Assembly (NCBI GenBank): GCA_977020255.1
Contig: CDROCS010006370.1
Coordinates: 1 to 64,000 of the forward strand
DNA length: 64,000 nt
Reading direction: 5' to 3'
DNA from: Obrimoposthia wandeli
Taxonomy: Eukaryota
Part shown: positions 4,118-64,000 of the stretch, in pieces
Layout of the letters: the number at the start of each line of letters is the position of its first letter
How positions within the stretch are numbered: position 1 is the stretch's first letter
Translations under genes and position numbers: made by a program
Notes under the pieces: generated by a model
Seen by the model: the letters and a program-made list of their open reading frames with translations, nothing else
What the model was told of the DNA's origin: nothing
Database searches by the model: none

Positions 4118-4276
4118 TCTTCAAACTCATCTAATGTGTCAATAAATACAATAATTGAGAATAATAAACAAAAAATAGAAAAATCTTTATAAAATTGTCA
4201 TAGAAAATACATGAATTGAAATACTAAAATAAAAACTAATCATAAAATAAAGTAATTATAATGTAGATAAAGGAAA

Positions 4277-7763: not shown

Positions 7764-8339
7764 AGTAGGTGGATGTGTCCGGTCTAATACACCCCCTCCC
7801 CCCAGGGGGAGTTACCACTGTCCTTTAAAACCCTGCATGGGTGTGGAGTGAAATTTCGTGTATGTGGGTGGAGTGAAATTTCGTGTATATGTGTGGAGTG
7901 AAATTTCGTGGATGTGTGTGGAGTGAAATTTCGTGGATGTGAGTGGAGTGAATTTTTCTAACCCCCCCCCAACATCCTAAAAACTAATTAACCCCATTTA
8001 ACGACCTTTAAAAATTGAAAATCTCATAGTGCTCCCAAAGAGTGAGGAAGTGCCTGGGGGCCATCTAAGGGCCAACGCGTGCCCTTCGGGCCCGCGGTGG
8101 CCTGACGAGCAATACATATATACATGGTTAACAAAAACATAAATTTAGACCAAAATCGGTCTAAAACAAACCTAATAAAAACACACAATGACCTACTTAT
8201 GAATTTGACTCTCAAAAATCATGTGTACTATAAGAAAATTTGACCTACTTTTGACATTGACCTTAAAAGATGGACGTTCTAAAGTGCATTTTTTTAGAAT
8301 TATAGCTAGGAGTGGCGCTAGTCCTTACCTCTCCCTACT
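7764..8339. mobile_element. 576-bp non-autonomous Maverick-related mini-element
   Basis: Begins AGTAGG, ends CCTACT; flanks TATATT / CATATT (5/6 TSD). Internal ACTGTCCTTTAAAAC..TGCATG.GT.TGGAG.GAAATTT matches the Maverick left end at ~52747-52787. Confidence 0.7.
7843..7956 (+). repeat. 25-bp tandem repeat x5 (GTGGAGTGAAATTTCGTG.AT.TG.)
   Basis: Units start at 7843, 7868, 7893, 7918 and 7943 (last copy partial). Confidence 0.95.
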
Positions 8340-11300
8340 CATATTATATTTATTTAACAAAATAAATTAAAGCTAATTGATATTAAAAGTGGAGTCAAAC
8401 AAGGGTACCAGTTGTCAATGACGCTTTTATGTTTGTCCATCGACTATATCCTCCCCGTCAGTCAACAGTTGAGTCTTTGCATCAACATCTACAACTGCTC
8501 ATTTACTACTCTATCGTATGCAAAAATGACATCGTGGTTCTATCGAACTGATACTACGAAAGGGAAACTCTGGTTGAGAAAATTGCCGAGCTAGCCCCTC
8601 GGGACACCTGATATTTAGACCGACCAAGTGTGAATATTAAAACAACATAGCTGAAAATACGCAGTCACTTTCACCATATAAACATTCTCACAAACTTTCA
8701 GAACACCAGAAAGAGAAACCAAGAACAATTTAAAGAATTCGTCAAGAACCAACAGAGGAAAACAAACTACAGAATTAGTTTACATAAATATGTCTAGAAG
8801 CTCTAGGAGGCTAGGACGAAGCTAATTATAAAGTATCACTTAATTTAATATATAACAACAAGGAAATTCTGCAACTGTCACTCAATTGCGGAAGAATTGC
8901 ATTTGAAGAATCAAATAAAATTTACAAAGCTCACCTGCTGCACATGTAGTATCTGACGCAACTAGGATAAATGAGATGGTGAGTTAGAGAAGAATATGTT
9001 GCTTCTTCTGGTTCAGTAGAAATCAGAGATTGCTGTGGCATTTGTGCTTGATTAATATATTTTAAAATTGAAAAAAAAATTTTAAATAAAATAATTCCTT
9101 TATAAAATCATTTTTGAATACCATGTTCTTATTCGACGATAAATAGTTACTATCTTGATTATTTTTCATTCTTGGTCAGAAGGTAATGTATATAAGGGGA
9201 ACTGTCATCATTATTTTTTCATATATTATGCCTCGCCACAATAAAGTTAATTTGGATGCCTAGTTCAAAGATAAATTATATGGAAACCTCTCCAGGGCAA
9301 CGATAAACTTCATCACCGTTAAAGTATATCGATAAACATAGTCAAAGCTTGATGGACCTTGGCAAACCTAACCACCTCGACACTAGCAGCACTATTGCCA
9401 TCAACAGAATGAGAAAGGATAGAGAGCTCCCAATATATCGATCTGATTAATAAAAAGTGTATAAAAGATTTGAGACTGTACTCCTCAACAGAACTTTGCT
9501 AAAGTTACCTGTCTCTCAACTTTAGCGAAAGCAGGGAGGAGATCCACAAGATCTGCGGTACCAATGAGAAAGAGGAGCAACCTCTTCAATTTTTCCGAGG
9601 CATCTATCAAATGTCAATGCCAATGGCATTTGATTCCATTGTCTCAATTAAAGACGGTTCTCGCGTCAGACTCGAACGAAAACTTATTCAGTGACCATGA
9701 AGCTTACAAGCCTGAAGATTCTGTAAGTTATCTGCTAGTAACACATAAAGAGCCCGAGGAGGAGTAAGATTTGATTCTGTTCCTTGAGGATTTGTACGGC
9801 GTTAGACCGACTCTTTCAACAAATGCAGTAGAACAAGCATCTGAGTCTGAACATAAAATATCGCACCTCAGATTGTGGCATCTGGCTTTCTTTCAATATT
9901 GCGACTCCGTTGAAAGCCATTAAGTGTTTGGAAAGACGGTCTCTTAATACCATTAGCTATCACACGTTGAACTTCAAATTCACCGTCAGACTGTGAATCA
10001 GACGAATTCACACTACATAATATATATTCTTCAAGCAGTTTGTCGTTATCAATACCACCGTCAGTTATAACTTTGTCATTATAAATATCATCTTCTCATT
10101 GTAGTTTCTTCTCTCTCTCTACTTGCATAATGTCGTTAATATCAGCTTTACCAAAATCATATTCCTAGGTTTTCAGAACATTTAACACCAGAGCTGGCTT
10201 CTCTTCGAGGTAGATCTCTTCGGGCCATTATCATCATCATCCAGTCTAAGAGACTATTGGATTGAATTAACTTTAGATGTAGTCAACTACAAATTATTTA
10301 ATTGTAAAGTATTGGGTATTCTTGACTATGTAAAATTATCTATATAGATAATTAGTAGGATACTTATTGATTGATATAACCTACTATGGATGTAAAAAAG
10401 CTGTCAGATTACAAAAGATTCCAAACAACGAAAAATCGTCAGTGGAATTTATTAATGGCATTGATCGTCGTATAAGTTTCGTATAGTCAATTCCCATTAA
10501 CTTACATGATATGCATTAAAAAAGTTCATAGCGCAAACAGCTGATTTGATAAAATAAAAACGAACTTATGTTTGAAATCGGGGCATAAAACTGAATCAGA
10601 TAGAATTCAAACGCGAAAATCGTATTTTATAGTGTTTTTTGTTAAAATTAGCTGAAGTCATAAGCTGCTGATTTTTATGATTTTATTTTTGAATTAACAA
10701 CAAACTTGTTTCTTGATATTTCCCAAAACCTTACAAATTACATAAACGATCAAAAACAGATAAAGAAATATAATTGTTTTCTCCTACGAATTAAGAAATG
10801 GTGAAATTTAACATTCAATTTAAAAAGAATCTGAGTATTTTTGTTGCTTTTACTAAAAAACAAAATTTTAAAGACTTTACTTTACTATTAGTATTAATTA
10901 ATAAAATACCGTAAAATTTGTAAAAATATTTCTTCATCAATCCTGTTAGCTAAAAAGCTTGTTAAACAAAATATTTGCTGAATAAGCATCTGTTGTAATT
11001 TTAGAAGTTATATTTAGATATTTTGCCCCAACTGTTTTCTTGTTTACGTACAAAATGTATAGTGGATGTTTTCACAACATATTTCACCAAAATATTGCAG
11101 AATCTTTAGCTATGTTTTTCTTAATTGAAAAAATCTCAAACAAACTTAAAAATGCAAGGATTATTTAATATAGTTTTCATACAAAAATTTTCAAATTTTT
11201 CTATGGATTCCGATCAAAAACTTTGCATTAAATTGCTTTATAATTTATTTTATATTATTAATAAATTTGCCAAATGCAATGCTAACAAAGAAATTAAATT

Positions 11301-11515
11301 TAACAAAATTCAATGGTATTCTCATTTATGCACTTACACCTGATACACACTTTAATATTGAATGTATTAACTAATGTGTATTATGAGGTCACTTCTCTAT
11401 TGTTTTCAAAAATGTTAAATTTTTTTGAGTGTATGTGATTTGTTTGACTGTATTGAAACTGTATAAATAAATCTTTCAATTTTCTGAATTTTGTTTATTC
11501 TAAATTTACGCCAAA

Positions 11516-28607
<17,092 letters not shown>

Positions 28608-44165: not shown

Positions 44166-44769
44166 GTCCATAATGAAAATTTATGATAAAGTTCACTCTT
44201 AACAATTAAGAAATGTGGTTTTTAACACACACATACACTATTTTATGTGAAATTTATGATAAAGTTCACTCTTATCAATTAAGAAATGCGGTTTTTTAAC
44301 ACACACATACACTATTTTATGTGAAATTTAAACTAAAGTTCACTCTTATAAGTTAATGAATGTATTACGTAATCACACACATACTATTTTATGTGAAATT
44401 TAGATCAAAGTTTTTCCTAGGCTTTCACATTTATAGAATTATGATAAAATTTCTTTAAATAACTTCAATTATATATTAAAATAAAAAATAAAATAAGAAA
44501 GAAGTCAGAGAATAATACAAAATTAAACACATTTATTATGTTATTACATAATATCATCTTCAAACTTAAGTGAATAACATTTACAAAGTAAGAAAGTCCA
44601 TTCTTTATACATTCTTTTCGTTTCAACGACTAAGTTACAACGGAATTAATAGAAAATTAGTAAAAATATTAATTTATTTGAATATTTGAATGAGAGTTTG
44701 AATAAATGAGAGGTAGAATGAATGTAAATGAATAAAATTATGCATGCAAGTATGAATGTCATTTACAAG

Positions 44770-46140: not shown

Positions 46141-48600
46141 TAGTTTACAATAAATTTATGCATATATTCACTTTAATATGTTGTAAGTTATTACTTTATT
46201 ATAATTTTCAACAAAAACTTCAAGTAGTTTACTTATTAAACATAAGTTTAATGTTTTGTACAATAAATTGACTTGTAAACATAATTTATTTTGGTATATT
46301 TTCAATTTAATATGTTGTAAGTTATTACTTTAATATAATTTACAACAAAAACTTCAAGTAATTTACTTATTAATCATAATTTTAATGATTTGATCAATAA
46401 ATTGACTTGTAAACATAATATAATTTGCATATTTTCAATTTAATATATTGTAAGTTAATACTGTAATATTTCATTACATAAAAAAGGAATTGATAGTTTA
46501 CTATCGTTTACAATAAATTTATGCATATATTCACTTTAATATGTTGTAAGTTATTACTTTATTATAATTTTCAACAAAACTTCAAGTAGTTTACTTATTA
46601 AACATAAGTTTAATGTTTTGTACAATAAATTGACTTGTAAACATAATTTATTTTGGTATATTTTCAATTTAATATGTTGTAATTTATTACTTTAATATAA
46701 TTTACAACAAAAACTTCAAGTAATTTACTTGTAAACTACAATATTTATTTGTTGTTGTATATATTCAGTTTAAAATGTTGTAAGTTAATACTTTAATATA
46801 ATTTACAACTAAATCTTCAAGTAATTTACTTATTAATCATAATTTTAATGATTTGATCAATAAATTGACTTGTAAACATAATATAATTTGCATATTTTCA
46901 ATTTAATATATTGTAAGTTAATACTGTAATATTTCATTACATAAAAAAGTAATTGATAGTTTACTATCGTTTACAATAAATTTATGCATATATTCACTTT
47001 AATATGTTGTAAGTTATTACTTTATTATAATTTTCAACAAAAACTTCAAGTAGTTTACTTATTAAACATAAGTTTAATGTTTTGTACAATAAATTGACTT
47101 GTAAACATAATTTATTTTGGTTAATTTTCAATTTAATATGTTGTAATTTATTACTTTAATATAATTTACAACAAAAACTTCAAGTAATTTACTTGTAAAC
47201 TACAATATTTATTTGTTGTTGTATATATTCAGTTTAAAATGTTGTAAGTTAATACTTTAATATAATTTACAACCAAATCTTCAAGTAATTTACTTATTAA
47301 TCATAATTTTAATGATTTGATCAATAAATTGACTTGTAAACATAATATAATTTGCATATTTTCAATTTAACACGTTGTAAGTTAATACTGTAATATTTCA
47401 TTACATAAAAAGTAATTCATAGTTTACTATCGTTTACAATAAATTTATGAATATATTCACTTTAATATGTTGTAAGTTATTACTTTATTATAATTTTCAA
47501 CAAAAACTTCAAGTAGTTTACTTATTAAACATAAGTTTAATGTTTTGTACAATAAATTGACTTGTAAACATAATTTATTTTGATATATTTTCAATTTAAT
47601 ATGTTGTAAGTTATTACTTTAATATAATTTACAACAAAAACTTCAAGTAATTTACTTGTAAACTACAATATTTATTTTGTTGTTGTATATATTCAGTTTA
47701 AAATGTTGTAAGTTAATACTTTAATATAATTTACAACCAAATCTTCAAGTAATTTACTTAATAATCATAATATTAATGATTTGATCAATAAATTGACTTG
47801 TAAACATAATATAATTTGCATATTTTCAATTTAACACGTTGTAAGTTATTACTATAATATTACATTACATAAAAAGTAATTGATAGTTTACTATCGTTTA
47901 CAATAAATTTATGCATATATTCACTTTAATATGTTGTAAGTTATTACTTTATTATAATTTTCAACAAAAACTTCAAGTAGTTTACTTATTAAACATAATA
48001 TTAATGATTTGATTAATAAATTGACTTGTAAACATAATATAATTGTATATATTTTCAATTTAACACGTTGTAAGTTATTACTATAATATCACATTACATA
48101 AAAAAGTAATTGATAGTTTACTATCGTTTACAATAAATTGACTTGTAAACATAATATATTTATGCATATATTCACTTTAATATGTTGTAAGTTATTACTT
48201 TATTATAATTTTCAACAAAAACTTCAAGTAGTTTACTTATTAATCATAAGTTTAATGTTTTGTACAATAAATTGACTTGTAAACATAATTTATTTTGGTA
48301 TATTTTCAATTTATATGTTGTAAGTTATTACTTTAATATAATTTACAACCAAAACTTCAAGAAATTTACTTAATAATCATAATTTTAATGATTTGATCAA
48401 TAAATTGACTTGTAAACATAATATAATTTGCATATTTTCAATTTAACACGTTGTAAGTTAATACTGTAATATTTCATTACATAAAAAGTAATTCATAGTT
48501 TACTGTCGTTTACTATAAATTTACTTGTAAACATAATATATTTATGCATTTATTCACTTTAATACGTTTTAAGTTATTAGAATTTGTGTTCTTGTATTCA
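46140..48600 (+). repeat. central AT-rich higher-order tandem array (~464-bp period built from ~100-130-bp subunits)
   Basis: Marker TTTATG(C/A)ATATATTCACTTTAAT recurs at about 46156, 46517, 46981, 47446, 47909, 48160 and 48541 (last copy diverged). Confidence 0.9.
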
Positions 48601-48629
48601 ATGATTAACTTTTATTAAACTATTATATA

Positions 48630-50280
48630 ACATTGACACTCTTATTTTTAAAATTACATTCACTTGCTAAACCCACTTACTTGTATTGAAATTCATACTA
48701 TCAATCACTTGCTCGTCATACTTGCATTCAATCTAACTATAATTTATTCAACAAAAACTCTATTTTAATTTACTTATAGTCTAAATTACACTTGCATTCA
48801 ATCAAACTATCGACACTCTTATTTTTAAAATTACATTCACTTGCTAAACCCACTTACTTGTATTGAAATTCATACTATCAATCACTTGCTCGTCATACTT
48901 GCATTCAATCTAACTATAATTTATTCAACAAAAACTCTATTTTAATTTACTTATAGTCTAAATTACACTTGCATTCAATCAAACTATCGACACTCTTATT
49001 TTTTAAAATTACATTCACTTGCTAAACCCACTTACTTGTATTGAAAATTCAAACTATCAATCACTTGCTCGTCATACTTGCATTCAATCTAACTATAATT
49101 TATTCAACAAAAACTCTATTTTAATTTACTTATAGTCTAAATTACACTTGCATTCAATCAAACTATCGACACTCTTATTTTTAAAATTACATTCACTTGC
49201 TAAACCCACTTACTTGTATTGAAAATTCAAACTATCAATCACTTGCTCGTCATACTTGCATTCAATCTAACTATAATTTATTCAACAAATACTCTATTTT
49301 AATTTACTTATAGTCTAAATTACACTTGCATTCAATCAAACTATCGACACTCTTATTTTTTAAAATTACATTCACTTGCTAAACCCACTTACTTGTATTG
49401 AAAATTCAAACTACCAATCACTTGCTCGTCATACTTGCATTCAATCTAACTATAATTTATTCAACAAAAACTCTATTTTAATTTACTTATAGTCTAAATT
49501 ACACTTGCATTCAATCAAACTATCGACACTCTTATTTTTAAAATTACATTCACTTGCTAAACCCACTTACTTGTATTGAAAATTCAAACTATCAATCACT
49601 TGCTCGTCATACTTGCATTCAATCTAACTATAATTTATTCAACAAAAACTCTATTTTAATTTACTTATAGTCTAAATTACACTTGCATTCAATCAAACTA
49701 TCGACACTCTTATTTTTAAAATTACATTCACTTGCTAAACCCACTTACTTGTATTGAAAATTCAAACTATCAATCACTTGCTCGTCATACTTGCATTCAA
49801 TCTAACTATAATTTATTCAACAAAAACTCTATTTTAATTTACTTATAGTCTAAATTACACTTGCATTCAATCAAACTATCGACACTCTTATTTTTAAAAT
49901 TACATTCACTTGCTAAACCCACTTACTTGTATTGAAATTCATACTATCAATCACTTGCTCGTCATACTTGCATTCAATCTAACTATAATTTATTCAACAA
50001 AAACTCTATTTTAATTTACTTATAGTCTAAATTACACTTGCATTCAATCAAACTATCGACACTCTTATTTTTAAAATTACATTCACTTGCTAAACCCACT
50101 TACTTGTATTGAAATTCATACTATCAATCACTTGCTCGTCATACTTGCATTCAATCTAACTATAATTTATTCAACAAAAACTCTATTTTAATTTACTTAT
50201 AGTCTAAATTACACTTGCATTCAATCAAACTATCGACACTCTTATTTTAAAAATTACATTCACTTGCTAAGACTCTTACT
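48630..50280 (-). repeat. ~178-bp tandem array, right arm, inverted (~10 units)
   Basis: Reverse-complement marker CTTGCTAAACCC recurs nine times from ~48665 to ~50095, plus a terminal variant. Confidence 0.95.
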
Positions 50281-53125
50281 TGTAAATGACATTCATACTT
50301 GCATGCATAATTTTATTCATTTACATTCATTCTACCTCTCATTTATTCAAACTCTCATTCAAATATTCAAATAAATTAATATTTTTACTAATTTTCTATT
50401 AATTCCGTTGTAACTTAGTCGTTGAAACGAAAAGAATGTATAAAGAATGGACTTTCTTACTTTGTAAATGTTATTCACTTAAGTTTGAAGATGATATTAT
50501 GTAATAACATAATAAATGTGTTTAATTTTGTATTATTCTCTGACTTCTTTCTTATTTTATTTTTTATTTTAATATATAATTGAAGTTATTTAAAGAAATT
50601 TTATCATAATTCTATAAATGTGAAAGCCTAGGAAAAACTTTGATCTAAATTTCACATAAAATAGTATGTGTGTGATTACGTAATACATTCATTAACTTAT
50701 AAGAGTGAACTTTAGTTTAAATTTCACATAAAATAGTGTATGTGTGTGTTAAAAAACCGCATTTCTTAATTGATAAGAGTGAACTTTATCATAAATTTCA
50801 CATAAAATAGTGTATGTGTGTGTTAAAAACAACATTTCTTAATTGTTAAGAGTGAACTTTATCATAAATTTTCATTATGGACTAGATCACAAAAAAGAAG
50901 GGTGGAGACTAAGCCACTTGATCCTTTGAATTAGTAGTTAGCCAAAAATAAGGGTGGAGACTAGACCACAAAAAGATGGGTGGAGACTAGATCACTAAAA
51001 GAAGGGTGGAGACTAGATCACTAAAAGATGGGTGGAGACTAAGCCAATTGACCCTTTCATAGTGGTATATCTCAAAAAGAAGGGTGGAGACTAAGCCACT
51101 TGACCCTTTCATAGTGGTATATCTCAAAAAGAAGGGTGGAGACTAAGCCACTTGACCCTTTAAACTATGGACGACCATAGTAGTATATCAAGGAAGGATG
51201 GAGTCTAAGCCACTTGACCCCTCTCCCCCTCCCCTAGGGTGTCACACCATACCTTGCCACACCATAAGGGTATTATGTTGCCTCACCAGAGGTGAGGCAA
51301 CATATACCCTTATGGTGTGGCAAGACACCTTTTATGGTGTGACATCCTTATGGAGTGACACCCTTTAGGGGGGGGGGGTAAAGTGGCTTAGACTCCATCC
51401 TTCCACCTACTCACGCCGCTGTCAGGTATCGCCCCGTAATGTGATTATAATCTCTGATTAGCCTAGATGGGACACCGAACAAATAACAAGCTGTACTAAA
51501 ATGAAAGTACTTAATTTTGTGCGACAGGGACCCTATTTAAATAAGTAATGTAACTTTCATTCGATACTCGAATAATCCTAGGTCATTTCATAAGTGTTTG
51601 CGGCGTTTGGAATCAGTGTTTCATCAACCGTAACAGCATCTCCATTTTCAACCCGATCAAATTCATTATCATTGAATAACTCCTCATTTGAGTTTGTAAC
51701 GATCAATTTTCTCCGGGTGAGACAGGGAATAAAAAACGTTTTGGTTATACATACCATATCAATATGATGTGAAAGAGAAGGTAATGAAGGTTTTTAGACT
51801 TTGTAAAACAAAACAAAAAACATATTTTTTGTATATACTGAATTTTTATAGAGCTGAATTTTCAAATGTATAGTGTTATAGTAAATGAGAGAACTGATAG
51901 ACTATCAGAAAGTCCAATAGAAATCCTTTGTGACTATTTCAGGAGCTATTAAATCCTAAATGGTAGACATGAAAGTGCAGTCACCTGCTCGTTTTCAATT
52001 TCGAAATTTACACATCCAATTTACACAATCTTCTAGTTTTAATTTACTTGCTTGACTTCTGTACCATCCACCGTCATTAGACTGCTCTTGAGTGGTTGAA
52101 AATTCAGTTTTTGTCTCAGTTTGTAAAAATTTTACACCTACACCGATATTTTACACATGCATAAATTTTCAATCCAGACTCAAATACAGTGTTTTATAGG
52201 ATAAAGGATTGCCTACCCCCTTACTTCAAAGAAATTATCAGCTCAGAAAATATAGAATGCTATAGAAAATAGAGTACTTTTTTAAACAAACATTTCCCAG
52301 TCTCTTTATATAGAAACCTTTTCAACAGTTGTCTATCTAAACGTTTTAGTGTTTAGGTAATATATAAAAGTATAATTATGTATATAATTATAAGCAGTAT
52401 TAAATGGGCAATGAAGTTTTCACATATGTTAAACAATAGCAGTTGTGTACAAAATCAAAACTACTCGTTTTAGTTTCAATTTTTTGGAAACAAAGTCATT
52501 TATACTGTTTGTTTTAAAACAACAACAAGTTATTTCTCATTGTTAGGGTCAGTTTATATTTTAAATGATTTGCCATATATTTAGAAACATAAGTGTTACA
52601 GAAATGATACAGCTACAACTTATCACTTGTAACTGAACGTCTTGAAATTAATTAAAATTAGTAAATTTAATTGGGAATCATAAACATGCTTATAAGGTGA
52701 CATAATTCATTTAAAATTTAAGATGTATATAAGTAGGTAGGCTGCTACTGTCCTTTAAAACTGTGCATGTGTATGGAGGGAAATTTCAGAGAAGGGGAGA
52801 ACCCCCCAATTTTTTATTTTATTTTGAATTTTATCGCTAATCTTAAAGGTGATTAGAGAAGACCACGGGAATCCATATTGACCCTGGCGGCCTATCGGAG
52901 ACGAGATTTCAAATAATATTTTATTTTTTATTTTTATAATTTATGTGAAAACATTACTACTATTTTTAAGAAAGATTTTAGATTAATAAATTACCACATG
53001 TTTGTTAAATATCTAGGTCAGTTTTATAATCTATGGTAGAAAAATAGGTTTAGATAAGATTTATATAATTTATAGGAGAGAAAAACAAAATACGAGTCAA
53101 AATTCGTTTCTAAACATTTATTAAA

Positions 53126-53434
53126 TCAAACATAAAACACCATATTGGCTTCACTCAAATTCCAAAGAGGCTGCAATTTCCTGTCATCAGCAAAATATCC
53201 ATTGAGACGTATTGAAATATTCCATAGTTCTTCATCTAAAATTGGAGCAATCACATATCCTAGATCATCTCTAAAAGCCAGACTGTGATCAGTTTCAAGC
53301 TGGAAAGAATTTCCTTCATATACATAATCAGGTATGTAAAATTCCAAAATATTTTTCAATTGATCAATATCAGATGTTGTTAAAATTTTAATGATATATT
53401 TATTCTCCACTTTTGATATTTTAACAGGATTCAT
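53126..53434 (-). CDS. Maverick accessory protein, paralog of 53688-53972 (possibly OB-fold/SSB-like)
   Basis: Intact 102-aa ORF; shares (A)F.DD.G and W...IRL.GY.....K..P.W motifs with its neighbour. Confidence 0.65.
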   Translation of the reverse strand: MNPVKISKVENKYIIKILTTSDIDQLKNILEFYIPDYVYEGNSFQLETDHSLAFRDDLGYVIAPILDEELWNISIRLNGYFADDRKLQPLWNLSEANMVFYV

Positions 53435-53687
53435 AACTCGTATAATTTGATGGCTCTTTAATATATTACATAGTTTTGCAATCCATTTGAATAATAAAAA
53501 TGTTCTACATATCTCAGAAGAGGATCCATTCTAAAATAAAGAAACTGATTAAAAAACAATGTTTATAAAAATGCATATAAGATACAAATATTATGAAAAT
53601 AAATAAAACTGATTATTACATGCCAAATGAAAGAAACATGGGAAAAATGAAAAAAAAGAATAAAACCGATGAAAGAAAAAGAAATAA

Positions 53688-53972
53688 TTAAAACATATAG
53701 ATATGAACACGTTCAATTTTCCACATAGGTAACTTTGTTCCAAATTCATTTTTCTTGTAACCATAAAGTCGAATTGTTACAGTCCATTGCTTCTTTTTAA
53801 GAAATGCATTAACATCTATTTTTCTTCCATAGTCATCTAGAAATGCTGCATCAGCTCCTCGGATATAAAATTCGTTCTTATTGAAAGTAAAATTTGGAAC
53901 TGCCTTTTCAACTCTCTGTTTTAGATATTGAAAATCTGGTTTTTGAATATTTGATAGATAATAGCTGAACAT
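53688..53972 (-). CDS. Maverick accessory protein, paralog of 53126-53434
   Basis: Intact 94-aa ORF containing AAFLDDYG...WTVTIRLYGYKKNEFGTKLPMWKIERVHI. Confidence 0.65.
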   Translation of the reverse strand: MFSYYLSNIQKPDFQYLKQRVEKAVPNFTFNKNEFYIRGADAAFLDDYGRKIDVNAFLKKKQWTVTIRLYGYKKNEFGTKLPMWKIERVHIYMF

Positions 53973-54163
53973 TCTTCTTTCACTTCTTTTACTAAAGCAA
54001 TCAGTTGAGCCATCTTCAAGAATCTAACTTTGTATTTGAAATATTGTTTCACTTCTTCATACATATCCTTATCCGATTCTTCAAACATTTCTAAATCTTC
54101 ATCACCGCATAATATCCGTTGGCTATCGTCCATCATTGATAATGGTCTTTGATATGAATGCAT
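53921..54163 (-). CDS. small unknown Maverick ORF with acidic N-terminus
   Basis: 80-aa ATG ORF overlapping the next ORF by 52 bp, consistent with compact viral packing. Confidence 0.4.
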   Translation of the reverse strand: MHSYQRPLSMMDDSQRILCGDEDLEMFEESDKDMYEEVKQYFKYKVRFLKMAQLIALVKEVKEECSAIIYQIFKNQIFNI

Positions 54164-54445
54164 TTATTATGATTTGTCCTCCAATGGTGCATTCTTTTAT
54201 ACTAATTTGTAACAAAGATATGAATCTCATTGGTTAATATTACTAAAGCATTGAATTTGATTGGACTAAATCCATATTAAAAATTGAAATTGGTTTGAAG
54301 AAATATATCATCCAATTATAATAGGTTTTCAAGATATTTACAAAAAATTTGCAATAATAAAGCAGTTTCATATATATATAAAAAAGAATTTACAGAAGAC
54401 AATTTTAGTCTATTAAAACTCGTAATTATAAATTACAAAGAATGA

Positions 54446-55218
54446 ATAGAAGATGATATTTCGTACTTACCATTCAATGATTAGAAGCCGAGTCGATATG
54501 TGAAAAAGTTTGATGATTTCACAGTTGTTATTTTTCCCTCAGGTTAGTTTTTTTTTTTTTTTAAATTTATTTACATGTTGATTTCTTTTAGGAAGTTGTC
54601 GTGTTATGGAATGCAAAACACTATTGAATGAGTTAAATTTACCATTTGGAATTCAAAACCATACAATCAATCAAAATTTCAGCTAATCTCGGGAAAGCAA
54701 TAAATCTTTATAAAATTGCAGTGAAAATGATAGAAGAATGCATATTTGAACCAGAAATTTTTCCTGCTCTCAGTTATTTGAAGTTTAAACCGCTATGTGT
54801 AAATATATTTTCCAGTGGTAAAGTCATGATATTGGGATTGAAAAATTTTGATTATGCAGACTTGGTTGATTCGATTTTAGAAAATATATTATATTACAGT
54901 TTGTTATCTTTCTATAAACAAACCCGTTTAAACCTATTGTTTCAAATGAATAATACTATAAAAAAAGACAATGAAGTGGATCGTCTTGTCAACGAATTTT
55001 TTTCTGGGAAAATTAAGGGTAAACAAATTTTATCAGAATTAAAAAATAATGATACAACAAAAGATAATATTGAAATATTGGTTAGATCACATGTTATTCA
55101 AGAATTTAGAAATCGAACACAAATAAATAAAATTATATCCAAATATTCATTAATTAATTTTTGTATTTCATATACAGTAGCTCTAACATTATACCTTTCA
55201 AAAAAGAAACTTCTATGA
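54446..55218 (+). pseudogene. TATA-binding-protein-like gene with a 49-nt intron, damaged
   Basis: Repeat 2 IQSIKISANLG.AINL...FEPEIFPALSY...VNIFSSGKVMILGLK aligns to TBP IQN.V.S.D.K..I.L...YEPELFPGLIY...LLIFVSGKVVLTGAK. Repeat 1 FTVVIFPS|GSCRVM is restored by removing GT..AG 54543-54591. One frameshift near 54650, and stops at 54443 and ~54480. Confidence 0.8.
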
Positions 55219-55254
55219 TAATATAAACAATGTCAAATTGAAAGAGTATATGTA

Positions 55255-55903
55255 ATGGAGCTTAATAATAATGCCGTATTTCAAATAGTTGGTCCCAGTG
55301 GAAGTGGAAAGACACATTTCGTATGTAAATTGTTGTAAAATGAATCTCTTTTCAATTCTAGTTTTAAAAATATTTATTGGCATCATGGTGAAGGAGAGGA
55401 AAGGGGATTAACCCAAGCAGAAGTCTGCAAGTTGAAGGGAATTAAATTTATTGAAGGATTTGATGTGAATTGGTCCGAAAGATTGAATAAAAGAAGATGT
55501 AATTATAATTAATGATTTGTATAAAGAAGCTAACAAGGAATTTGACTTTAATAATTTATTTTCAAAGATTGCAAGACATCGCGAAGTAACAGTTATATGT
55601 ATCACTCAAAATCGTTTTCCCCGAGGAGGTCATCATAGAACAAGAAATCTTAATGTACATTACTTAATTTTATTTAAAAATTCTATAGATCAAACAGTTG
55701 TACATGTTGTAGCCAGACAAGCATTTCACCAAAATAAGAACTTTCTAATTGATTCATTCGATGATGCTGCTAAACAAGCACATGGGTATATATTTATTGA
55801 CTTTACACAAGCTTGCCCAGATGATTTACGTGTTTTAACAAACATATTTAATTCAATGGAAGTAATTGTTTATAAACAAACAGAGAACAATTATAAAAAA
55901 TAA
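55255..55903 (+). pseudogene. packaging ATPase (A32/FtsK-like)
   Basis: Walker A VGPSGSGKT, Walker B-like VIIINDL, and ARHREVTVICITQN. One stop and one frameshift. Confidence 0.93.
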
Positions 55904-55910
55904 ATATGCA

Positions 55911-56057
55911 ATGCCTTTTAAAAAGTTGATAGTGAAACGTAAACGTAAAGTAAAGTCTAAGAAAACAAAAAAAAAATCATTCAGAAAAAAAGCAGTGAAT
56001 AAATTAATCAAGTTTGTAGTTCGGAGTAAAAGAAAACTTAAATGGCTTCAAATATAA
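55911..56057 (+). CDS. small Lys/Arg-rich protein, putative DNA-condensing core protein
   Basis: MPFKKLIVKRKRKVKSKKTKKKSFRKKAVNKLIKFVVRSKRKLKWLQI lies between virion genes. Confidence 0.45.
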   Translation: MPFKKLIVKRKRKVKSKKTKKKSFRKKAVNKLIKFVVRSKRKLKWLQI

Positions 56058-56085
56058 ACAAGATTTAAATTTAACTTTTTTTAAA

Positions 56086-56380
56086 ATGAAGAAAATACAA
56101 AGAAGCATACCCTACTTTAATGCTTTGATCAAAGCCTCTTCTCATAAGAGAATGAGTATTCTGAAAGCAGTTCCATATTTTATTGTATATGATTTATTGG
56201 AAGTTTTGTATAATATAGTTTTGGGTCGAGTAAAAATTGGAAAACGGAAAAATGTATTAAAGAAATATGGAAAAACTCTTCTAGATATTGCTAATGTAAA
56301 ATATAAAAAAAAGGAAACGAAATATTATTCTTATACATAATGGCGGTTTCATAGGAGCTGTTGTTTCATTTATCAGTAGA
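56086..56380 (+). pseudogene. conserved small Maverick protein ending in an NGGFIG motif
   Basis: KRMSILK...LLEVLYNIVLG..KI...LKKY; frameshifted tail HNGGFIGAVVSFI resembles the (Q/N)xGGF protease-site tail of Maverick small ORFs. Confidence 0.65.
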
Positions 56381-56490
56381 ATTATATTTGCGATACGTAC
56401 ATAAACAATTATTTTAAAAATCACCTAAAGATATGGTTGCTAACCCTTCTTTACCTAAATTTAAATGTTCTATTTATTCAAATTGTTGTA

Positions 56491-57516
56491 ATGGAGAACA
56501 AATGGTTCAATCCAAAAGACCCAATTGGCTACACAGGAGTTTCGAAACTGACAAAAATACAAAACAGAATTACAAGAAAACGCAGAAATGGCTGAACGAT
56601 CAAATAGTCTACAGTCTGAACAAGCCAATGAGTAGAAGGTTTCCAACTAGAGCTTACAAAACCAGCGGTCCTAATAATTTTTGGCAAATGTATTTGATGA
56701 TATGATTCCATATTCTTCCATTAGTAAGGGATACCGATATATTTTAACATGTATTGATGTATTTAGCAGGTTTGCGCGTGCAATTCCAATTAAAACAAAG
56801 ACTTCAATAGCTATGCTTGAAGCCATTAAAGAAATATTAAAAGAGAACATTTTACAAAATGTGCAAACTGATTTAGGAAAAGAATTTTATAATAATCAAT
56901 TTCAAACATTATTTAAGCCAAATAATATAAATTACTACTCGGTGTTTTCGCAGTACAAAGCAGCATTAGTAGAAAGATTTAATCGTACTTTAAAAGATCG
57001 AATAAAAAAGTATTTCACAAAAGAAGAAAATAAAAAGTGGATCCAAGTTTTGCGTAAAATAATACATGCATATATTCACTCTGAACGTAGAAGTCTCAAG
57101 GGAATGAAACCTGTTGATGTTACTGATAAAAACTCTATTGATATTTGGATAGACAGGAATAAAAAAGAAAATGTTAAAAAAGCTACATATAAGAAAAATG
57201 AATATGTTCCAATTTCTAAAATTAGCTCTACTCCATTTATTAAAAACTTTGATCAGATTGGAGCGATGAAATATTTTGTATAAGTAAAATTGATTAAAAG
57301 AGTAATCCAATAATGTATACTATTAAAGATGCTGACAATAATATCGTTCACGGTAAATTTTACGAGCAAGAACTACAAGTAATATCAAATAAACCTAGCG
57401 TTTTCCGTATTCAAAAAATATTAAAATCTAAGGGTACAGGTAAACATAAACAATACTTTTATAAATGGCATGGTTATTCAGATCCAACTTGGATATCAGC
57501 ATCTAATATAATATGA
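56491..57516 (+). pseudogene. retroviral-like (rve) integrase with C-terminal chromodomain
   Basis: WFNPKDPIGYTG, YILTCIDVFSR, VQTDLGKEF, VERFNRTLK, then GKFYEQELQ and FRIQKILKSKG...Y.KWHGYS. Frameshifts present. Confidence 0.95.
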
Positions 57517-58495
57517 AGTCTATGTATATGGTTTTATCTAGTAACACATGCCCGAAGACTCAGCCGGATAATGACGATAGTAGCTTTATTATCGATTGGA
57601 AAAATCCTATAAATCTCCAAGGAGAATGGGAAGCGGCTTTAACTAATTTTTTTAAAATTATTCTCCAATTAGTATCAGAAAAAACTCACATATTTCGTTT
57701 ACCAAAGAAACTGAAGTTGTGATCGGGTTTGATAGTAAAGGAAAATTATTTTACAATTGTATAGATAAATAAGTGAAAGTAATATATGAAAATAACAAAA
57801 TAAGATTTAAAAATCGATTATTTTTTATTCAATTGACATTTGAATCTAAAAAAGAAGCTCTTCATTTCAGTTTTGATAGTGAACATGCAATAGGTATTAA
57901 GATACGGGATATTGTCACATCTAAATGGGTTAGAAATGTTCCTGGTAGAGTTAGAAGACTGTTGTTAGCTGAAACGAGATCAAAGGATGTACTTTAACTG
58001 AAAAAGTTTTTAAAAATTATAAAATATATAGTGAAGTGAATTTATGTAAATTAATATAGAAGGAATTTAGTGAATATTTGGATAAATGTGTAACATTAAA
58101 ATATGGTAAATTGACGTTTACAGTAAAGAGCAATGTAAAGCGGGTTTCATTTAATAATAAAATCGCAAAAAAACTCAGTTTAAACAGAAATACCTTAGAA
58201 ACCTGTACAATAAAACTCATAAAAGATAAAAATAAGGCAAAACTTTAAAATTATATAAAGCATTTATATATTTATACTAATTTAATAGAACCAACGCTTG
58301 TAGGAGGACTACGAGTTCCACTTTTGAGAACAATATGGATATCTTAAACTCAAACTAAAGTTCGGGACGTTATCGGTATTCGTATAAATCAACCCATGTA
58401 TCTTCCAGTTGCTCTATTTTCTATAAGCAATATTGAAGTAAATATTAGAGATGATTCCGAACAACTAATAGATTTCTAATAGACAAAGAAAGCAA
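57513..58495 (+). pseudogene. minor capsid protein (penton/PX-like)
   Basis: N-terminus MYMVLSSN...PDN..SSFI.DWKNPINLQGEWEAAL; C-terminus YIYTNLIEPTLVGGLRVPLLR...NIEVNIRDD..QLIDF. Confidence 0.85.
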
Positions 58496-58496
58496 A

Positions 58497-58874
58497 ATGG
58501 CAAATCCGGCAATAATTGAAGCTTATAGTCAAAGCCAACAGGGTTGAGAATAACCATATTTTGTTGGTAAACAATATGGATCCAGCTGGCTTAGAACATT
58601 AGGTAGATTTGCCTTTCCTATTTTGAAGAAACTCGGAAGATTTGTATCAAATTTAGGAAAGGACTACCTTTCATCTAAGGACAATAAACTAATACCAACT
58701 TTTAAGAAGCATGCACTTAATGAACTTGATAATGTTTTACCTGACGTTACTAATTTGATTAGAAAAGGTAAATCAAATGAAAGCCAAGAAGGTAGCGGAT
58801 TTAAACGTAAAAAGAAGCAAAAAATTAATATAAACAAACGTAAGAAAGTTGAAGAAACAATATTTGCAAATTGA
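58497..58874 (+). pseudogene. Maverick QxGxG-motif protein (PW/PZ-type; core or membrane-lytic candidate)
   Basis: YSQSQQG..PYFVGKQYGSSWLRTLGRFAFPILKKLG amphipathic segment, then QEGSG and a basic tail. Confidence 0.7.
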
Positions 58875-60066
58875 GTTGCGTCAAAACCGTATTGTTGTAC
58901 ATAATGCTTTCATTGAAGAAATATTTCTAGTTAACTCAGCTTCAGGAACCACTTTAACCGATTTAGAATTTAATATTAATGGTTCCAAAAGTGAATATTT
59001 AGATTTGAATGATACTTTGCTTTAGGTTCAAATAAAAGTCTTAAATCGAGATGAGACTAATTTAGCGGAAAATGCCCATGTAACACCTGTTAATTATATC
59101 TTTAATTCTTTATTTAGTGATGCCAATATTACTCTTATTAATATCAAAATTAAGTGTAGAAATTCTTTATATGCTCATAAAGCTTTGGTTGAAAGTCTAT
59201 TGAATTATAGTACTGATACTCAAAATACTAATTTGACAACCATTGGTTATGATAAAACGCTGCAACTCACAAAGAATGGATTGCAGAATCTAAAGCTTAC
59301 GAAATGTGTGGCTCTATGAGATTGAACTTCTTTGAACAATCGAAATATTTAATTCCCGGTGTTAATGTACATCTTCGTTTTAAACGTAATAAATGGAATT
59401 TTTCTTTGATAAGCACAGATATTCTAAAACCTAGACTTGATATTTTGCATGCAAAACTATATGTTCAAAGAGTTAAAACCGAGCAATAAGATTAATGGCA
59501 CATAATATAGGAATGGAAAAAAACAATGGTTGTTATCCAATAAGAGAAACTAAACTTATATCCTACTCTTTAGGTACGGGTACACAAGCTTTTAATAAGG
59601 ATCAAATTTTTGGTGATGTAAGATTCCCGAAATTCGTTTTAATTTCTTTTTAAAAAACTGCAAAGTTTCTAGGAAATTATACGACAGATGTAACTCAATT
59701 TGACAATCGTAATGTATGTTCAGTAACACTTTCAAGAAATACTGATTATCGTGATACATATAAAACATTTTTCGAAGATAACGCTTATGCTTTGGCTTAT
59801 ACGCAATCTATTATTCTGAATTTGGGTCAACTAGATAAAAATATAAGCAATGGTATTTCTTTCACTGAGTTTAAAAGTAGCTGCCCGTTCTTCACATTTG
59901 TTTTGGCACCAGACTTTGATATAAACCAATGCCAACTACCAAAGATGGAAATTTACGACTAGAAATTAAGTTCAATGCAGCTTTAACACATCCTACTACG
60001 GTGCTTATTTACGTAGTATTTGATTCGGAAATACAAATCAATAAAAACAAAACTATCATATTATAG
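58871..60066 (+). pseudogene. major capsid protein (PY, double jelly-roll type)
   Basis: LEFNING..SEYLDLNDTLL, PVNY.FNSLFS, Y..KA.VESLLNYS, FFEQSKYLIPGVNVHLRFKRN; ends IQINKNKTIIL*. Confidence 0.9.
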
Positions 60067-60067
60067 A

Positions 60068-60224
60068 ATGGAGTAAGACATTTTTTTAAAATTTATATTT
60101 ATTAATTTTTATTTAGTTCAGTACAAGTACAAGAATCAGCAGAGAAGTTCATAGGTGATAAATTCAATGGAGTTTATCCTATTGATATGATTCCATTTAT
60201 TCAATCAGCCTAGCTTTATTATTT
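60068..60224 (+). pseudogene. adenain-type cysteine protease, N-terminal part, with 44-nt intron
   Basis: ATGGA|GTAAG..TTTAG|TTCAGTA (intron 60073-60116) gives MDSVQVQESAEKFIGDKFNGVYPIDMIP. Confidence 0.75.
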
Positions 60225-60230
60225 ATTGAG

Positions 60231-61572
60231 AAAATCCTATAAATATCCAAGGAGAATGGGAAGCGACTTTAACAGTTTTTTTATTTATTATTCTCCAATT
60301 ACTATCATAAAAACTCACATATTTCGTTTACAAAATAAATGAATTATGAAAAACAAATAATGTTGTGATCAGGTTTGTTAGTAAAGGAAAATTATATTAG
60401 AATTATAGATAAAATGATAAATAAAGAAGTGAAAGTAATAAATGAAAATAACAATGTCAGATTTAAAAATCGATTATTTTTTATTCCATTAGCATTTGAA
60501 TCTAAAAAAGAAGCTCTTCAATTCGGTTTTGTTAGTGAACAAGCAGTAGGTATTAAGAGACGGGATATTGTATCATCTAATTCGGCTAGAAATGTTCCTT
60601 ATAGAGTAGCAAAACTGTTATTAGTTGAAACGAGAGTAAGTGATGTACTGGAACCCTAAAAGATTTAAAAATATTATAAAATAGATAGTGAAGTGAATTT
60701 ATGTAAATTTATAATGAAGGAATTTAGTGAATATTTGGATAAATATGTGTAACATTAAAAATATTAAATAGACGTTTACAGTAAAAAGCAATATAAAACG
60801 GGTTTCCTTTGATGATAAACTCGCTAAAAACGTCGATTTGACCAGAAATACCTTTGAAACCTATACAATAAAACTCATAAAAGATAAAAATAAAGCAAAA
60901 CTTTAAAATGCTATTAATCAGTTATATATTTATACTAGTTTAATAGAACCAATGCTTATTGAAGGACTACGAGTTCCACTTTTGAGAACGATATGGATAT
61001 CTAAAAGTCAAACTAAAATTGATAAAGTTATAGGTATTCGTATAGATCAACCAATGTATCTTTCAGTTGCTCTCTTATCTATAAACAATATTGAAGTAAA
61101 TATTATAGATGATTCCAGACAACTAATAGATTTCACATACGAAGCCAAGACAAATTTAACAATACATTTAAGAAAAGAAATGGCGAATCCTGTAATAAAT
61201 GAAGCTTATAGTCAAAGCCAACAAGGTGGATAATTACCATATTTTGTTGGTAAACAATATGGATCCGGCTGGCTTAGAACATTATGTAGATTTGCCTATC
61301 CTCGTTTTAAGAGACTCGAGCAATTTGTATAAAAATTAGGAAAGGACTACCTTTCATCTAAGGATAATAAGCTAATACCAACTTTTAAGAAGCATGCACC
61401 TTATGAGCTTATTAATGTTTTACCTGACGTTGCTAATTTGATTAAAAAAGTTAATCAAATGAAAGCCAAGAAGGTAGAGGATTTAAACGTAAAAAAGAAG
61501 CAAAAAATTAATATAAACAAACGTAAGAAAGTTGACGGAACAATAATTGAAAAATGAGTTGCGCCAAAACTG
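60231..61572 (+). repeat. diverged direct duplicate of ~57601-58889 (most of minor capsid, QxGxG gene, MCP start)
   Basis: Colinear similarity from AAAATCCTATAAAT.TCCAAGGAGAATGGGAAGCG to GAGTTGCG.CAAAAC, with scattered substitutions and indels. Confidence 0.93.
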
Positions 61573-61578
61573 ATTTAA

Positions 61579-61719
61579 TATCCGTCAGCACTCATCAGAC
61601 ATGTGGAAACTCATGGGAAACGCCATGTATTCTATAATAAAACTCGTAAGCAAAACCTGTTAACTACTTATTGTGGTCTTTTATGTCTTTTATGGTTGTA
61701 TCATCAAATTTCTCAATAA
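61579..61719 (+). pseudogene. adenain-type protease, C-terminal part
   Basis: YNKTRKQNLLTTYCGLLCLLWL matches the oxyanion Gln and catalytic Cys motif (Q...S/T..CG.YC). Confidence 0.8.
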
Positions 61720-62329
61720 ATTTTACGAATTTAAATGACTTATTTTTATACAAGTTAGATTTATATAGATTATAATATTAATTTCAAACTTTTTTAACAA
61801 ATTTATAAGTTACATGCTTTACGTGATTGTAAATAATTTTATGAAAAGAAATTATTAAAACGTTTAAAAAATATTAATTAAAAATATCTAAAAAATAAAA
61901 AAAAAACTATATGATCATACTAAATTACATAAAACAATAAACTAAAAATACTTAAAAAACTTACATTTTTACATTTTTTAACATCTAAAATTTTTATAAA
62001 TTTTAATTATGTAGAGTTTTATTAAATAATCAATATTTTAAAAAAATTAAAGATTAAAAAACTTTTTTTTATACAATTCTAAAATCAAATCTGGAAAAAA
62101 TATTTTTTTATATATATCACGTTGCAGGTGTTTAGTACCAAAATTTTAATTCTTGTAAGTTTTTTACTATATCATACGTTGTAGGCGTTTTTTCGATATA
62201 AATGAAACATTTAACATTAATGGCTCAGTGATATTTTATGTGAGTTAATTTTTTTTATTATGATTTTATTTTATTTTTTCACATTTATTTATAGATTCAT
62301 TTTTAATATGAAATTTACAAAGATATAAT

Positions 62330-62394
62330 CCAAGTATCGTGTTTAGTATATGCCAAGTATCCTGTTTAGTATATACCAAGTATCCTGTTTAGTT
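62330..62394 (+). repeat. ~23-bp tandem repeat x~3 upstream of putative pPolB start
   Basis: CCAAGTATC(C/G)TGTTTAGTATAT repeated. Confidence 0.85.
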
Positions 62395-62471
62395 TGAATT
62401 GAAGAAGAATGCTACTGATCTTATTATTGTGACTCTCTCTCTATTATTGTTATAATTATTATTATTTAAAC

Positions 62472-64000
62472 ATGTCTCATATAACTTTTAATAATGGTAA
62501 TACTTTTGTCCGGTCTTCAGATGAAGGGCTCCTCGCTTTAGGTGGCTCCAAAATGGATCATCTAGTTTAAATAACAACAAAATCAACAACACAAGATTTT
62601 TTAGTTTTAAAAAGCCATTTCCCGTAACGCCAATTGGCAGTCCGAACACATCTCCTTTTAAAGATTTAATTCATTTATTAGTAGACGAGAGTGACAATAA
62701 AACCCAAAACAAATATTATCATCGCAATGTGCGAGATAATATAAATTTTGATTCAATAACTAATGTTAAAGTGTTATATAAATTGGTTAAGCGCCTTAAG
62801 AATAAGTTGAAACGATGCTTTAAAAAGAAGGAAGCTAAAAAAGGAGCTAGAACAGTTAACAATTCATGCTGATTTATTACATTCAGTTAAGCAAATAAAA
62901 ATAGAACCTAATAAACTAATTAGAGACATGGCTAAAAAATTTATACTGCGTTTGGTTCACACAAATTATATTTTAAGCAAAACGGGAAATCTTTTAATTT
63001 TTGTGACAAGGTTATCGATGTCTTATAAGACGTAGCACTTATCACTGTTTTCCTAAAATGTTTGGTGTTAATTATAGTTCTAATGATCGTTTTATGAATA
63101 TTAATACAAATTAACTTAATTGTTTTAAAGTTACTACAATTTCTCAAGATGCCCTAATAAAAGATTTAGCAGAGAAAATTTACTCAATATATAGAACTCA
63201 AAAATTATATTTTATAGATCATTCGTTTGTCACATCATTCAACTTTGATGATAGATTAGATGATGTACTGTTTGATGGTGCATTAATTAGTGTTTTTCCT
63301 AAAGTTTGTCACCATGTCAACTTTATAACTACTGTACTAGTAATATCCATAATTTAGATTGTCATGTTTTTATGAAAAAATATTACATGTTTTAAAACGG
63401 GTACATATGTCCCTTATGTGATATATTGTTTACAAATATAGAATATTTAGATTTCTATTCTTATCAGAAAATTCATTTAACTTATTTTAATACTAAGAAA
63501 TCAAACTATAAGCGTAAATCATCATCATCATTATCGTCAAGCAGTAATACAGTTATAAAACTAAAAACAATTAATAATATAATACCGGTTGATAGTTTTA
63601 ATAATAGTTTTGATTTTAAAATAGTTGATTGTTGGTCACGTCCTCATAGTCTAACATTTTCACCTAATTTTGATTTCACTACATTTTTAAATGATAATGA
63701 TTTTACAAATTTACGGGATAATGAATTAGATAAGCATTTAAACGAATCTCTAGATTTTAATGACATACTTTATACATATGAAAAACCATTTGTTAATGAA
63801 TTATATAATGATTTTGTAGCAACTGTATTTCTTTTCGGTTTTCGAACTGGGGCTGCTTATGATAAACATAGAACCCACTGTAATTTTAATACTGATACTA
63901 TAACTTTATTCACTATGCCAGAAAATAAATATTGTGAATTCACAGATTGGTCAAAGTCAGTTCAACCTTATTTTGTAGAATACGCTGATTTTGAAAGTAT
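62472..64000 (+). pseudogene. protein-primed DNA polymerase B, N-terminal part; runs off window
   Basis: Open frame 63396-64000 ends GFRTGAAYDKHRTHC...MPENKYCEFTDWSKSVQPYFVEYADFES, matching the zinc finger, MP..K...F.N and YADFE ExoI motif of Maverick pPolB. The upstream part and start position are approximate. Confidence 0.7.

Follow-up and report, generated by a model that had tools for sequence, protein, structure and literature searches.

Whether the integrase of a Maverick (Polinton) can move DNA that encodes nothing is the question raised by a stretch of 64,000 nucleotides from Obrimoposthia wandeli (GenBank assembly GCA_977020255.1, contig CDROCS010006370.1, positions 1 to 64,000 of the forward strand), referred to below, at its full length, as the window. 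Three elements in it, a 576-bp non-coding unit (E1), a 7.8-kb non-coding foldback (E2) and the left part of a decayed Maverick (E3), begin with the same bases, and E2 lies within the polymerase remnant of another Maverick (E4). Polintons are defined by a protein-primed polymerase together with a retrovirus-like integrase (PMC5499653), and their signature is a 6-bp target-site duplication (TSD) combined with long terminal inverted repeats (TIRs) (PMC3014272, PMC8969392, PMC10045372). In this study, we report that E1, E2 and E3 are one end family, and we argue, as the best inference, that E1 and E2 were probably moved in trans by a Maverick integrase. The relatives of E3 used for comparison comprised nine contigs available with DNA (L001, L002, L005, L006 and L008-L012) and two listed with genes only. 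Coordinates of all features are collected in Table 1.

A common end family

On the forward strand, AGTAGG stands at 7764, 43604 and 52732, the starts of E1, E2 and E3, and its complement CCTACT closes both complete elements (8334-8339 in E1 and 51406-51411 in E2), as stated in a preliminary description of the window. Taken alone, the hexamer counts for little: 23 copies are present in the window where 12.8 would be expected, and 1 of 100 shuffles reached that number. The case rests on the sequence past the hexamer. AGTAGGT is common to the outermost bases of all three elements. The first 29 bases of E1 and E2, followed by a C run, agree without gaps at 21 of 29 positions; past the hexamer 15 of 23 bases are identical, a score equalled at only 5 of the 111,068 other positions in the window. 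This terminal match between E1 and E2 was absent from the preliminary description. A subterminal motif of ~40 bp shared by the 576-bp element and the left end of the Maverick had been noted there, and was recovered by blastn within the window as an alignment of 7817-7857 with 52747-52787 (41 bp, 88% identity, E 9e-9).

The likeness among E1, E2 and E3 starts precisely at AGTAGG, with unrelated flanks, and none of the other AGTAGG sites in the window carries the shared blocks. E3 lacks the 38-bp block common to E1 and E2, which makes E1 the bridge between E2 and E3, and the link between these two goes via E1 only. Two further candidates were set aside. A second colinear GC-rich block of E1 and E3, seen by eye, had no BLAST or MAFFT support and is not claimed, and a 32-bp AGTAGG..CCTACT mini-palindrome at 10354-10385 has no TSD and is probably due to chance.

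Structure and setting of the gene-less elements

E2 consists of two arms of ~2.5 kb and ~2.8 kb around a satellite core. Each arm carries the 20-bp end motif once at the tip and five more times, inverted, farther inward. Between the arms, the inner 961 nt are 100% identical and the outer 230 nt ~93% identical, and the tips match perfectly. Folding of the outermost 227 nt as single-stranded DNA yields an almost perfect hairpin (-115.6 kcal/mol, z -22.6) in which AGTAGGT alone is left unpaired. E1 has a different build. Its right arm holds three inverted copies of AGTAGG within 150 bp, an arrangement unlikely to have arisen by chance, and these copies recall the end motif repeated along the arms of E2.

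That neither E1 nor E2 has coding capacity was confirmed: the longest open reading frames (ORFs) are 63 aa and 56 aa, and tblastn with the proteins of the relatives detected no trace of Maverick genes inside either element. The 6-bp TSDs that had been ascribed to both stand in full for E2 (CACGCC, 6/6) and with one mismatch for E1 (5/6). The duplication of E2 is perfect; a 6/6 agreement of flanks so spaced would arise in the window with a probability of 0.0006.

The two flanks of E2 were compared with the protein-primed DNA polymerase B (pPolB) of the relatives separately, each on its own. Pieces at 42948-43602 and 51414-51524 on the minus strand were found to abut E2 directly on either side. 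Because the two matches are colinear in the pPolB query, E2 sits within a dead polymerase remnant, E4; the right-flank match is weak (E 0.004, 38 residues). The colinear flanks serve as empty-site evidence for E2 and mark it as a discrete insertion, and the locus is a nest in which one Maverick-type element lies inside the polymerase remnant of another Maverick. E4 is interrupted by E2, its one insertion, and by no fewer than 2 frameshifts and no fewer than 7 stops, and ~0.8 kb of coding remnant is left; it had not been noticed in the preliminary description. Two neighbouring stretches were considered as parts of E4 and rejected. The ORF at 42044-42769 (minus strand) has no homologs and no Pfam family, and the sequence at 51525-52731, examined as the missing N-terminal part of the polymerase, is unlike the start of the E3 polymerase or those of the relatives. 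The ORF itself encodes ~209 aa over 42044-42671, is intron-less, has a signal-peptide-like start and lies in a stretch richer in G+C.

A coincidence of the hexamer and the duplications in AT-rich DNA might be considered, given the 23 occurrences of AGTAGG, a number that 1 of 100 shuffles equals, and the imperfect TSD of E1. Such a coincidence is very improbable, since the likeness extends past the hexamer (15/23 between E1 and E2; 41 bp at 88% between E1 and E3) and begins right at it in all three elements, and since the ends of E2 are perfect, its duplication is 6/6 and the gene remnant on its two sides is colinear.

E3, a decayed Maverick, and its relatives

E3 represents the left portion of a Maverick/Polinton provirus, now decayed, whose lineage is adintovirus-like and has a TBP-like gene. 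The presence of both pPolB and an rve integrase places it within the Polinton definition, and its identification as a Maverick in the preliminary description is borne out by the integrase, the pPolB match, the gene order of the relatives and the double jelly-roll capsid fold predicted by the model of a homolog. In tblastn searches, the counterparts of its genes were colinear with those of the relatives, and the ATPase, capsid and protease genes were all broken; no minor capsid protein was recognised. Pfam searches of the open frames of E3 returned TBP and rve only; the ATPase, capsid and polymerase genes were invisible without the relatives. Break counts (Table 1) are minima, obtained from chained tblastn matches to several intact relatives.

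The E3 integrase scored 31.7 bits for rve, just under the cut-off of 32.6, and 19.3 bits for Chromo, below its cut-off. Its frame has 423 homologs (best 62% identity, ~345 aa), many with rve plus a chromodomain and all from metagenome or Logan contigs; an exact look-up found no record of the sequence of the integrase ORF in the window. The alignable start of the polymerase is open, the remainder lying past the window, and the gene is on the plus strand as in L006 and L010. The left flank of E3 is TATATA. The duplicate pair of gene X and the 110-aa gene comes after the capsid gene in E3, and some relatives have two tandem X genes before the capsid gene.

The role of helper that had been assigned to E3 is contradicted by its condition. 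Every alignable core gene carries frameshifts or stops, so that E3 is a relic and no recent supplier of proteins, and the block of 38 bp shared by E1 and E2 is missing from it.

Genes of the relatives follow the order TBP-like gene, A32-type ATPase, one or two small genes, integrase, a gene of ~355 aa, one of ~110 aa, one of ~410 aa, a small protease-like gene and PolB, the last with a length of 1,070-1,290 aa. Pfam assignments were above cut-off for Pox_A32 in the ATPase homolog of L001 (25.5 bits, cut-off 22.8) and for Peptidase_C5 in the protease homolog of L005 (31.9 bits, cut-off 21.3), and DNA_pol_B_2 (PF03175) is on record for L002, L006 and L009. Integrases of the intact relatives have rve and Chromo only and no zinc-finger family, in keeping with a Maverick/Polinton integrase, which lacks an N-terminal HHCC zinc finger. 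A Pfam match of one small relative protein (17.7 bits, cut-off 25) was taken as noise. The ~410-aa gene is predicted to encode a double jelly-roll capsid protein: the AlphaFold model of a homolog (pLDDT 81.9, pTM 0.83) matched the major capsid proteins (MCPs) of PBCV-1, SGIV, Sputnik and mavirus in Foldseek with E 1e-16 to 1e-12. A capsid-based scan of viral contigs found no relatives.

The TBP-like gene, of ~150 aa, is present in 8 of the 8 relatives whose contig covers the region (L001 3634-4080, L005 10246-10698, L008 304-768, L010 1036-1524, L011 1405-1866 and L012 1358-1807, among others). In most relatives the A32 ATPase is its immediate or close neighbour; in L005 it stands at the far end. 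Both in Pfam and among PDB TBPs its similarity is to one TBP repeat, so that it corresponds to half a normal TBP. TBP-like genes were noted earlier in MELD viruses with adintovirus-like PolB (PMC8502044).

As to other traits of the relatives, the N-terminal part of PolB contains an Endonuclease_7 (PF02945) stretch (polymerase genes at L001 11383-14790, L008 9926-13786 and L009 8029-11313), and the matches of the relatives' PolB did not include an OTU domain, which has been mentioned for adintovirus PolB. Accessory genes vary: MATH/TRAF-like and dUTPase genes occur, as does, beside the ATPase, a phospholipase A2 domain of parvovirus type (L002 6411-7400, L008 1649-2092 and two ERZ23498365 contigs, for which genes are listed).

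A putative end sequence of the Maverick lineage

Judged by its integrase (P0011), which is 59% identical overall and up to 68% in single matches, L010 ranks with the closest relatives. Its sole AGTAGG is at position 50 and is followed by T and a short C run. The hexamer stands outside the first gene, 369 bp from its stop in L010 and 394 bp in E3; the ~400 bp from 52732 to the first E3 gene have no homology to the relatives. For the end sequence L010 is the sole informative contig: L005 is a distant relative, and the contigs of L001, L011 and L012 break within subterminal repeats. L006 shows GC-rich, bacterial-looking DNA at 1-2300 joined to the AT-rich element; this contig is probably chimeric, which renders its left junction uninformative on the element end. 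The ends of some relatives are made of short subterminal repeats or of 280-bp tandem units with C-run/G-run palindromes, and L001 has long subterminal tandem arrays. Reiterated subterminal motifs are thus a rule in the lineage, and E1 and E2 are of like build. By the match in L010, AGTAGGT would be the end of this Maverick lineage.

E1 and E2 might instead belong to an unrelated cut-and-paste family, IS3EU/GingerRoot-like or of the foldback type, the block at 52732 being a truncated copy beside the Maverick. The right end of E3 is out of view, the first ~400 bp from 52732 are unlike the relatives, and foldback elements typically have long tandem-repeat arms. Duplications of 6 bp are also produced by IS3EU/GingerRoot (PMC10045372), those of Ginger being 4-5 bp (PMC3014272, PMC8969392, PMC10045372). 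Against such an origin, the ends of IS3EU/GingerRoot are TA..TA or TG..CA and not AG..CT, and no other transposase lies near E1 or E2, the other transposon coding remnants in the window being a Ty3/gypsy pol and a piggyBac fragment. In addition, L010 has AGTAGGT at a matching distance from the first gene, and no CCTACT closes a small element ahead of the Maverick genes. A different transposase is for these reasons improbable.

Proposed history of E1 and E2

According to the reading that we favour, AGTAGGT in the outermost bases would be the end that the rve integrase of the lineage recognises. The protein would have been supplied not by E3 but by an intact Maverick at another place in the genome, and would have bound the ends of E1 and E2 and inserted each gene-less element, whether excised or copied, duplicating 6 bp of target. 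Both elements would then be end sequences only, namely the terminal bases and reiterated subterminal motifs, to which E2 adds a satellite core. E2 would most likely go back to the two long inverted repeats of a Maverick that had shed its genes, and E1 may be a short derivative whose left end joins E2-type and E3-type blocks.

Decay in place offers another account, in which E2, and perhaps E1, is a complete Maverick that inserted itself and later lost its genes on site by internal deletion and satellite expansion. A self-inserted Maverick would give identical ends and a 6-bp duplication, a single copy of each element is known, the long ends of the relatives are made of tandem units as are the arms of E2, and Maverick decay is heavy in the region, as seen in E3 and E4. 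On the other side, tblastn with all proteins of the relatives found no Maverick gene trace in E2 or E1. E2 is highly ordered, and the 961 nt of 100% identity between its arms and its perfect TSD give it a young appearance, in contrast to the old-looking dead genes in its surroundings; E1 measures just 576 bp and joins two kinds of end block. We regard decay in place as unlikely, a little less so than the action of a different transposase.

Several observations weigh against mobilisation in trans and the assignment of the end on which it draws. E1 and E2 were seen once each, and trans movement and in-place decay of a full copy are both compatible with this; no second copies or empty sites were found. 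The two DNA patterns used as queries (the E1/E3 block and the E1/E2 end) gave 0 matches in metagenome and viral contigs. There is no intact helper of the same end family within the window, E3 and E4 both being dead. E3 is without the 38-bp block, and its right end lies past the window, leaving its own TIR and TSD out of view. In E1, the flanks TATATT and CATATT agree at 5/6 positions (chance of at least 5/6, 0.010), and the arms match each other over the 6 bases of AGTAGG only. Support from relatives for an AGTAGGT end comes from one contig (L010) with 49 bp of flank only, and the complete 14.2-kb contig L008, with a 65-bp TIR, has a different end (TAGACGG...), so that the end sequence varies among sublineages.

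Mobilisation in trans, as put forward in the preliminary description, thus stands in part: the shared ends and 6-bp TSDs fit an rve integrase, and each element has been seen once. We infer the supply of integrase in trans from the ends and the TSDs alone, and consider movement of E1 and E2 by a Maverick integrase modestly probable. Nothing was found here in support of the further proposals that the two elements use pPolB or capsid and behave as satellites.

Features of the window

Outside the Maverick-related elements, a Ty3/gypsy pol fragment (RT_RNaseH, Integrase_H2C2, rve_3) was detected in several frames at 1186-4189 (plus strand), and a remnant of a piggyBac-type transposase (DDE_Tnp_1_7, E 1e-8) at 33574-34074 (plus strand). 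At 15189-24541 (plus strand) lie exons of a host gene resembling alpha-actinin, with spectrin repeats and an EF-hand. Their best PDB match is human alpha-actinin-2 (E 1e-27), and they indicate an animal host with long introns. Rfam and tRNA scans gave no matches.

Table 1. Features of E1 to E4 in the window
Feature	Position	Strand	Details
E1, non-coding, AGTAGG...CCTACT	7764..8339	+	576 bp; longest ORF 63 aa
E1 left flank TATATT, putative TSD copy	7758..7763	.	5/6 against right flank, chance 0.010
E1 right flank CATATT, putative TSD copy	8340..8345	.	
E1 terminal block as in E2: AGTAGGTGGA, GTCTAA..CAC, then C-run/G-run	7764..7816	+	21/29 ungapped against E2 end
E1 block as in E3 left end	7817..7857	+	41 bp, 88%, E 9e-9
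E1 25-bp tandem array, 4.8 copies	7837..7956	+	repeats part of the E3-like block; a 17-mer exact 4 times
E1 right arm, three inverted AGTAGG	8192..8339	-	outermost copy is the element end
E2, non-coding foldback, AGTAGGTGG...CCACCTACT	43604..51411	+	7,808 bp; longest ORF 56 aa
E2 TSD CACGCC, left copy	43598..43603	.	6/6
E2 TSD CACGCC, right copy	51412..51417	.	6/6
E2 left terminal palindrome: end motif, spacer, inverted end motif	43604..43830	+	folding as single-stranded DNA
E2 right terminal palindrome	51193..51411	-	
E2 left arm, 26-, 52-, 74- and 179-bp tandem arrays	43604..46138	+	20-bp end motif 6 times
E2 central AT-rich satellite, 134/228/464-bp periods	46159..48472	.	GC 0.18
E2 right arm, inverted copy of left arm	48635..51411	-	end motif 6 times
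E3, left 11.3 kb of decayed Maverick/Polinton	52732..64000	+	leaves window; gene order as in L001, L006, L008, L009, L010
E3 left end: AGTAGGTAGG, then block shared with E1	52732..52787	+	L010 has AGTAGGT at equivalent place
ORF weakly like first gene of L010 (156 aa)	53126..53434	-	tblastn 32 bits, 24% identity
ORF weakly like 108-aa gene of L001	53700..53987	-	tblastn E 1e-5
TBP-like gene, single TBP repeat; 1-2 frameshifts, 2 stops	54419..54906	+	Pfam PF00352 E 1.9e-11; tblastn; L001 homolog matches PDB TBPs
A32-type packaging ATPase; 1 frameshift, 1 stop	55228..55900	+	tblastn ~70% identity, full coverage
Small protein	56092..56298	+	homologs match Adeno_PX: weakly in L009; L001 16.7 bits, below cut-off
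rve integrase, chromodomain-like C-end; ~3 frameshifts, 1-3 stops	56476..57513	+	Pfam rve E 2e-7
Gene X (~355 aa in relatives); 1 frameshift, 2-3 stops	57519..58476	+	tblastn; about half alignable
Small gene (~110 aa in relatives); 2 stops in aligned stretch	58497..58868	+	tblastn
Double jelly-roll MCP gene (predicted); 3 frameshifts, 2 stops	58888..60063	+	tblastn up to 66% identity, 95% coverage
Second partial copy of gene X and 110-aa gene; 1-2 stops each	60212..61470	+	tblastn
Adenain-like protease remnant, ~30%	61579..61707	+	tblastn against L005 and L008 protease homologs
Protein-primed DNA polymerase B, 5' part; leaves window	63396..64000	+	tblastn E 4e-13 over 63813-63998 against pPolB of L001, L006, L009
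E4, dead pPolB remnant of another Maverick	42948..51524	-	tblastn with pPolB of L001, L002, L005, L006

Significance and comparison with known systems

The window reveals a Maverick lineage in which the TBP-like gene is constant, together with the nesting of a Maverick-type element in the polymerase remnant of another. It is a tentative and somewhat doubtful suggestion that Mavericks support gene-less dependants of very different build, here a 576-bp MITE-like unit (MITE, a miniature transposable element with inverted repeats) and a 7.8-kb satellite-bearing foldback with 220-nt end hairpins. This contrasts with the usual view of them as self-sufficient virus-like elements; if so, virus-like elements would, like ordinary transposons, breed dependants that spread repeats and satellites. 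Gene-less elements with Maverick ends and TSDs would also reveal, by comparison, the sequences that such an integrase needs. Should both families prove multi-copy and polymorphic, Maverick integration would require in cis no more than the few terminal bases and the reiterated subterminal motifs, and Mavericks would then supply animal genomes with MITE-like and satellite-bearing DNA. In annotation, elements of this kind would otherwise be filed under unknown repeats or foldback elements.

Some non-autonomous Polinton entries are listed in Repbase. The searchable literature yielded no account of gene-less derivatives that have Maverick ends and are either of MITE size or of foldback form. Non-autonomous Polinton copies were apparently absent from a lizard genome (PMC3014272), and the excision step of Mavericks/Polintons has been described as unknown (PMC2836005).

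A likeness in concept is to the transpovirons (PMC5499653), small linear DNAs with TIRs that rely on giant viruses: in both cases a small TIR-bearing DNA would draw on the machinery of a virus-like element belonging to the Polinton-centred class. Transpovirons have protein-coding genes and enter virions; E1 and E2 are non-coding, and nothing here points to their packaging. IS3EU/GingerRoot elements share the 6-bp TSD and an rve-related enzyme (PMC10045372); their ends are TA..TA, occasionally TG..CA, in contrast to AG..CT in E1 and E2, and the window holds no transposase of that kind.

With the foldback and Galileo elements (P superfamily), E2 has in common kilobase-long inverted arms of tandem repeats and a non-coding centre. 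It differs in its 6-bp TSD and in the AGTAGG ends that it shares with a Maverick, foldback and Galileo elements having 7-9-bp duplications and other ends.

Relative to the Mavericks/Polintons and the adintovirus-like MELD viruses, the E3 lineage agrees in the rve integrase (with a chromodomain in the relatives), pPolB, A32 ATPase, double jelly-roll MCP and adenain-like protease, as well as in the AG...CT ends and the 6-bp TSD, the latter seen directly on E2. It departs from them in the constant placing of the TBP-like gene beside the ATPase and in the Endonuclease_7-like stretch of the relatives' PolB, and E3 itself is decayed and visible for its left 11.3 kb.

Finally, E1 and E2 resemble MITEs, for example those of the piggyBac type (bioRxiv 10.1101/2025.02.07.637071), in being gene-less, in having the ends and TSD length of a coding element and in their reiterated subterminal motifs. 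Unlike for MITEs, the presumed source of the enzyme would be a virus-like, self-replicating element with a retroviral-type integrase and not a cut-and-paste transposase.

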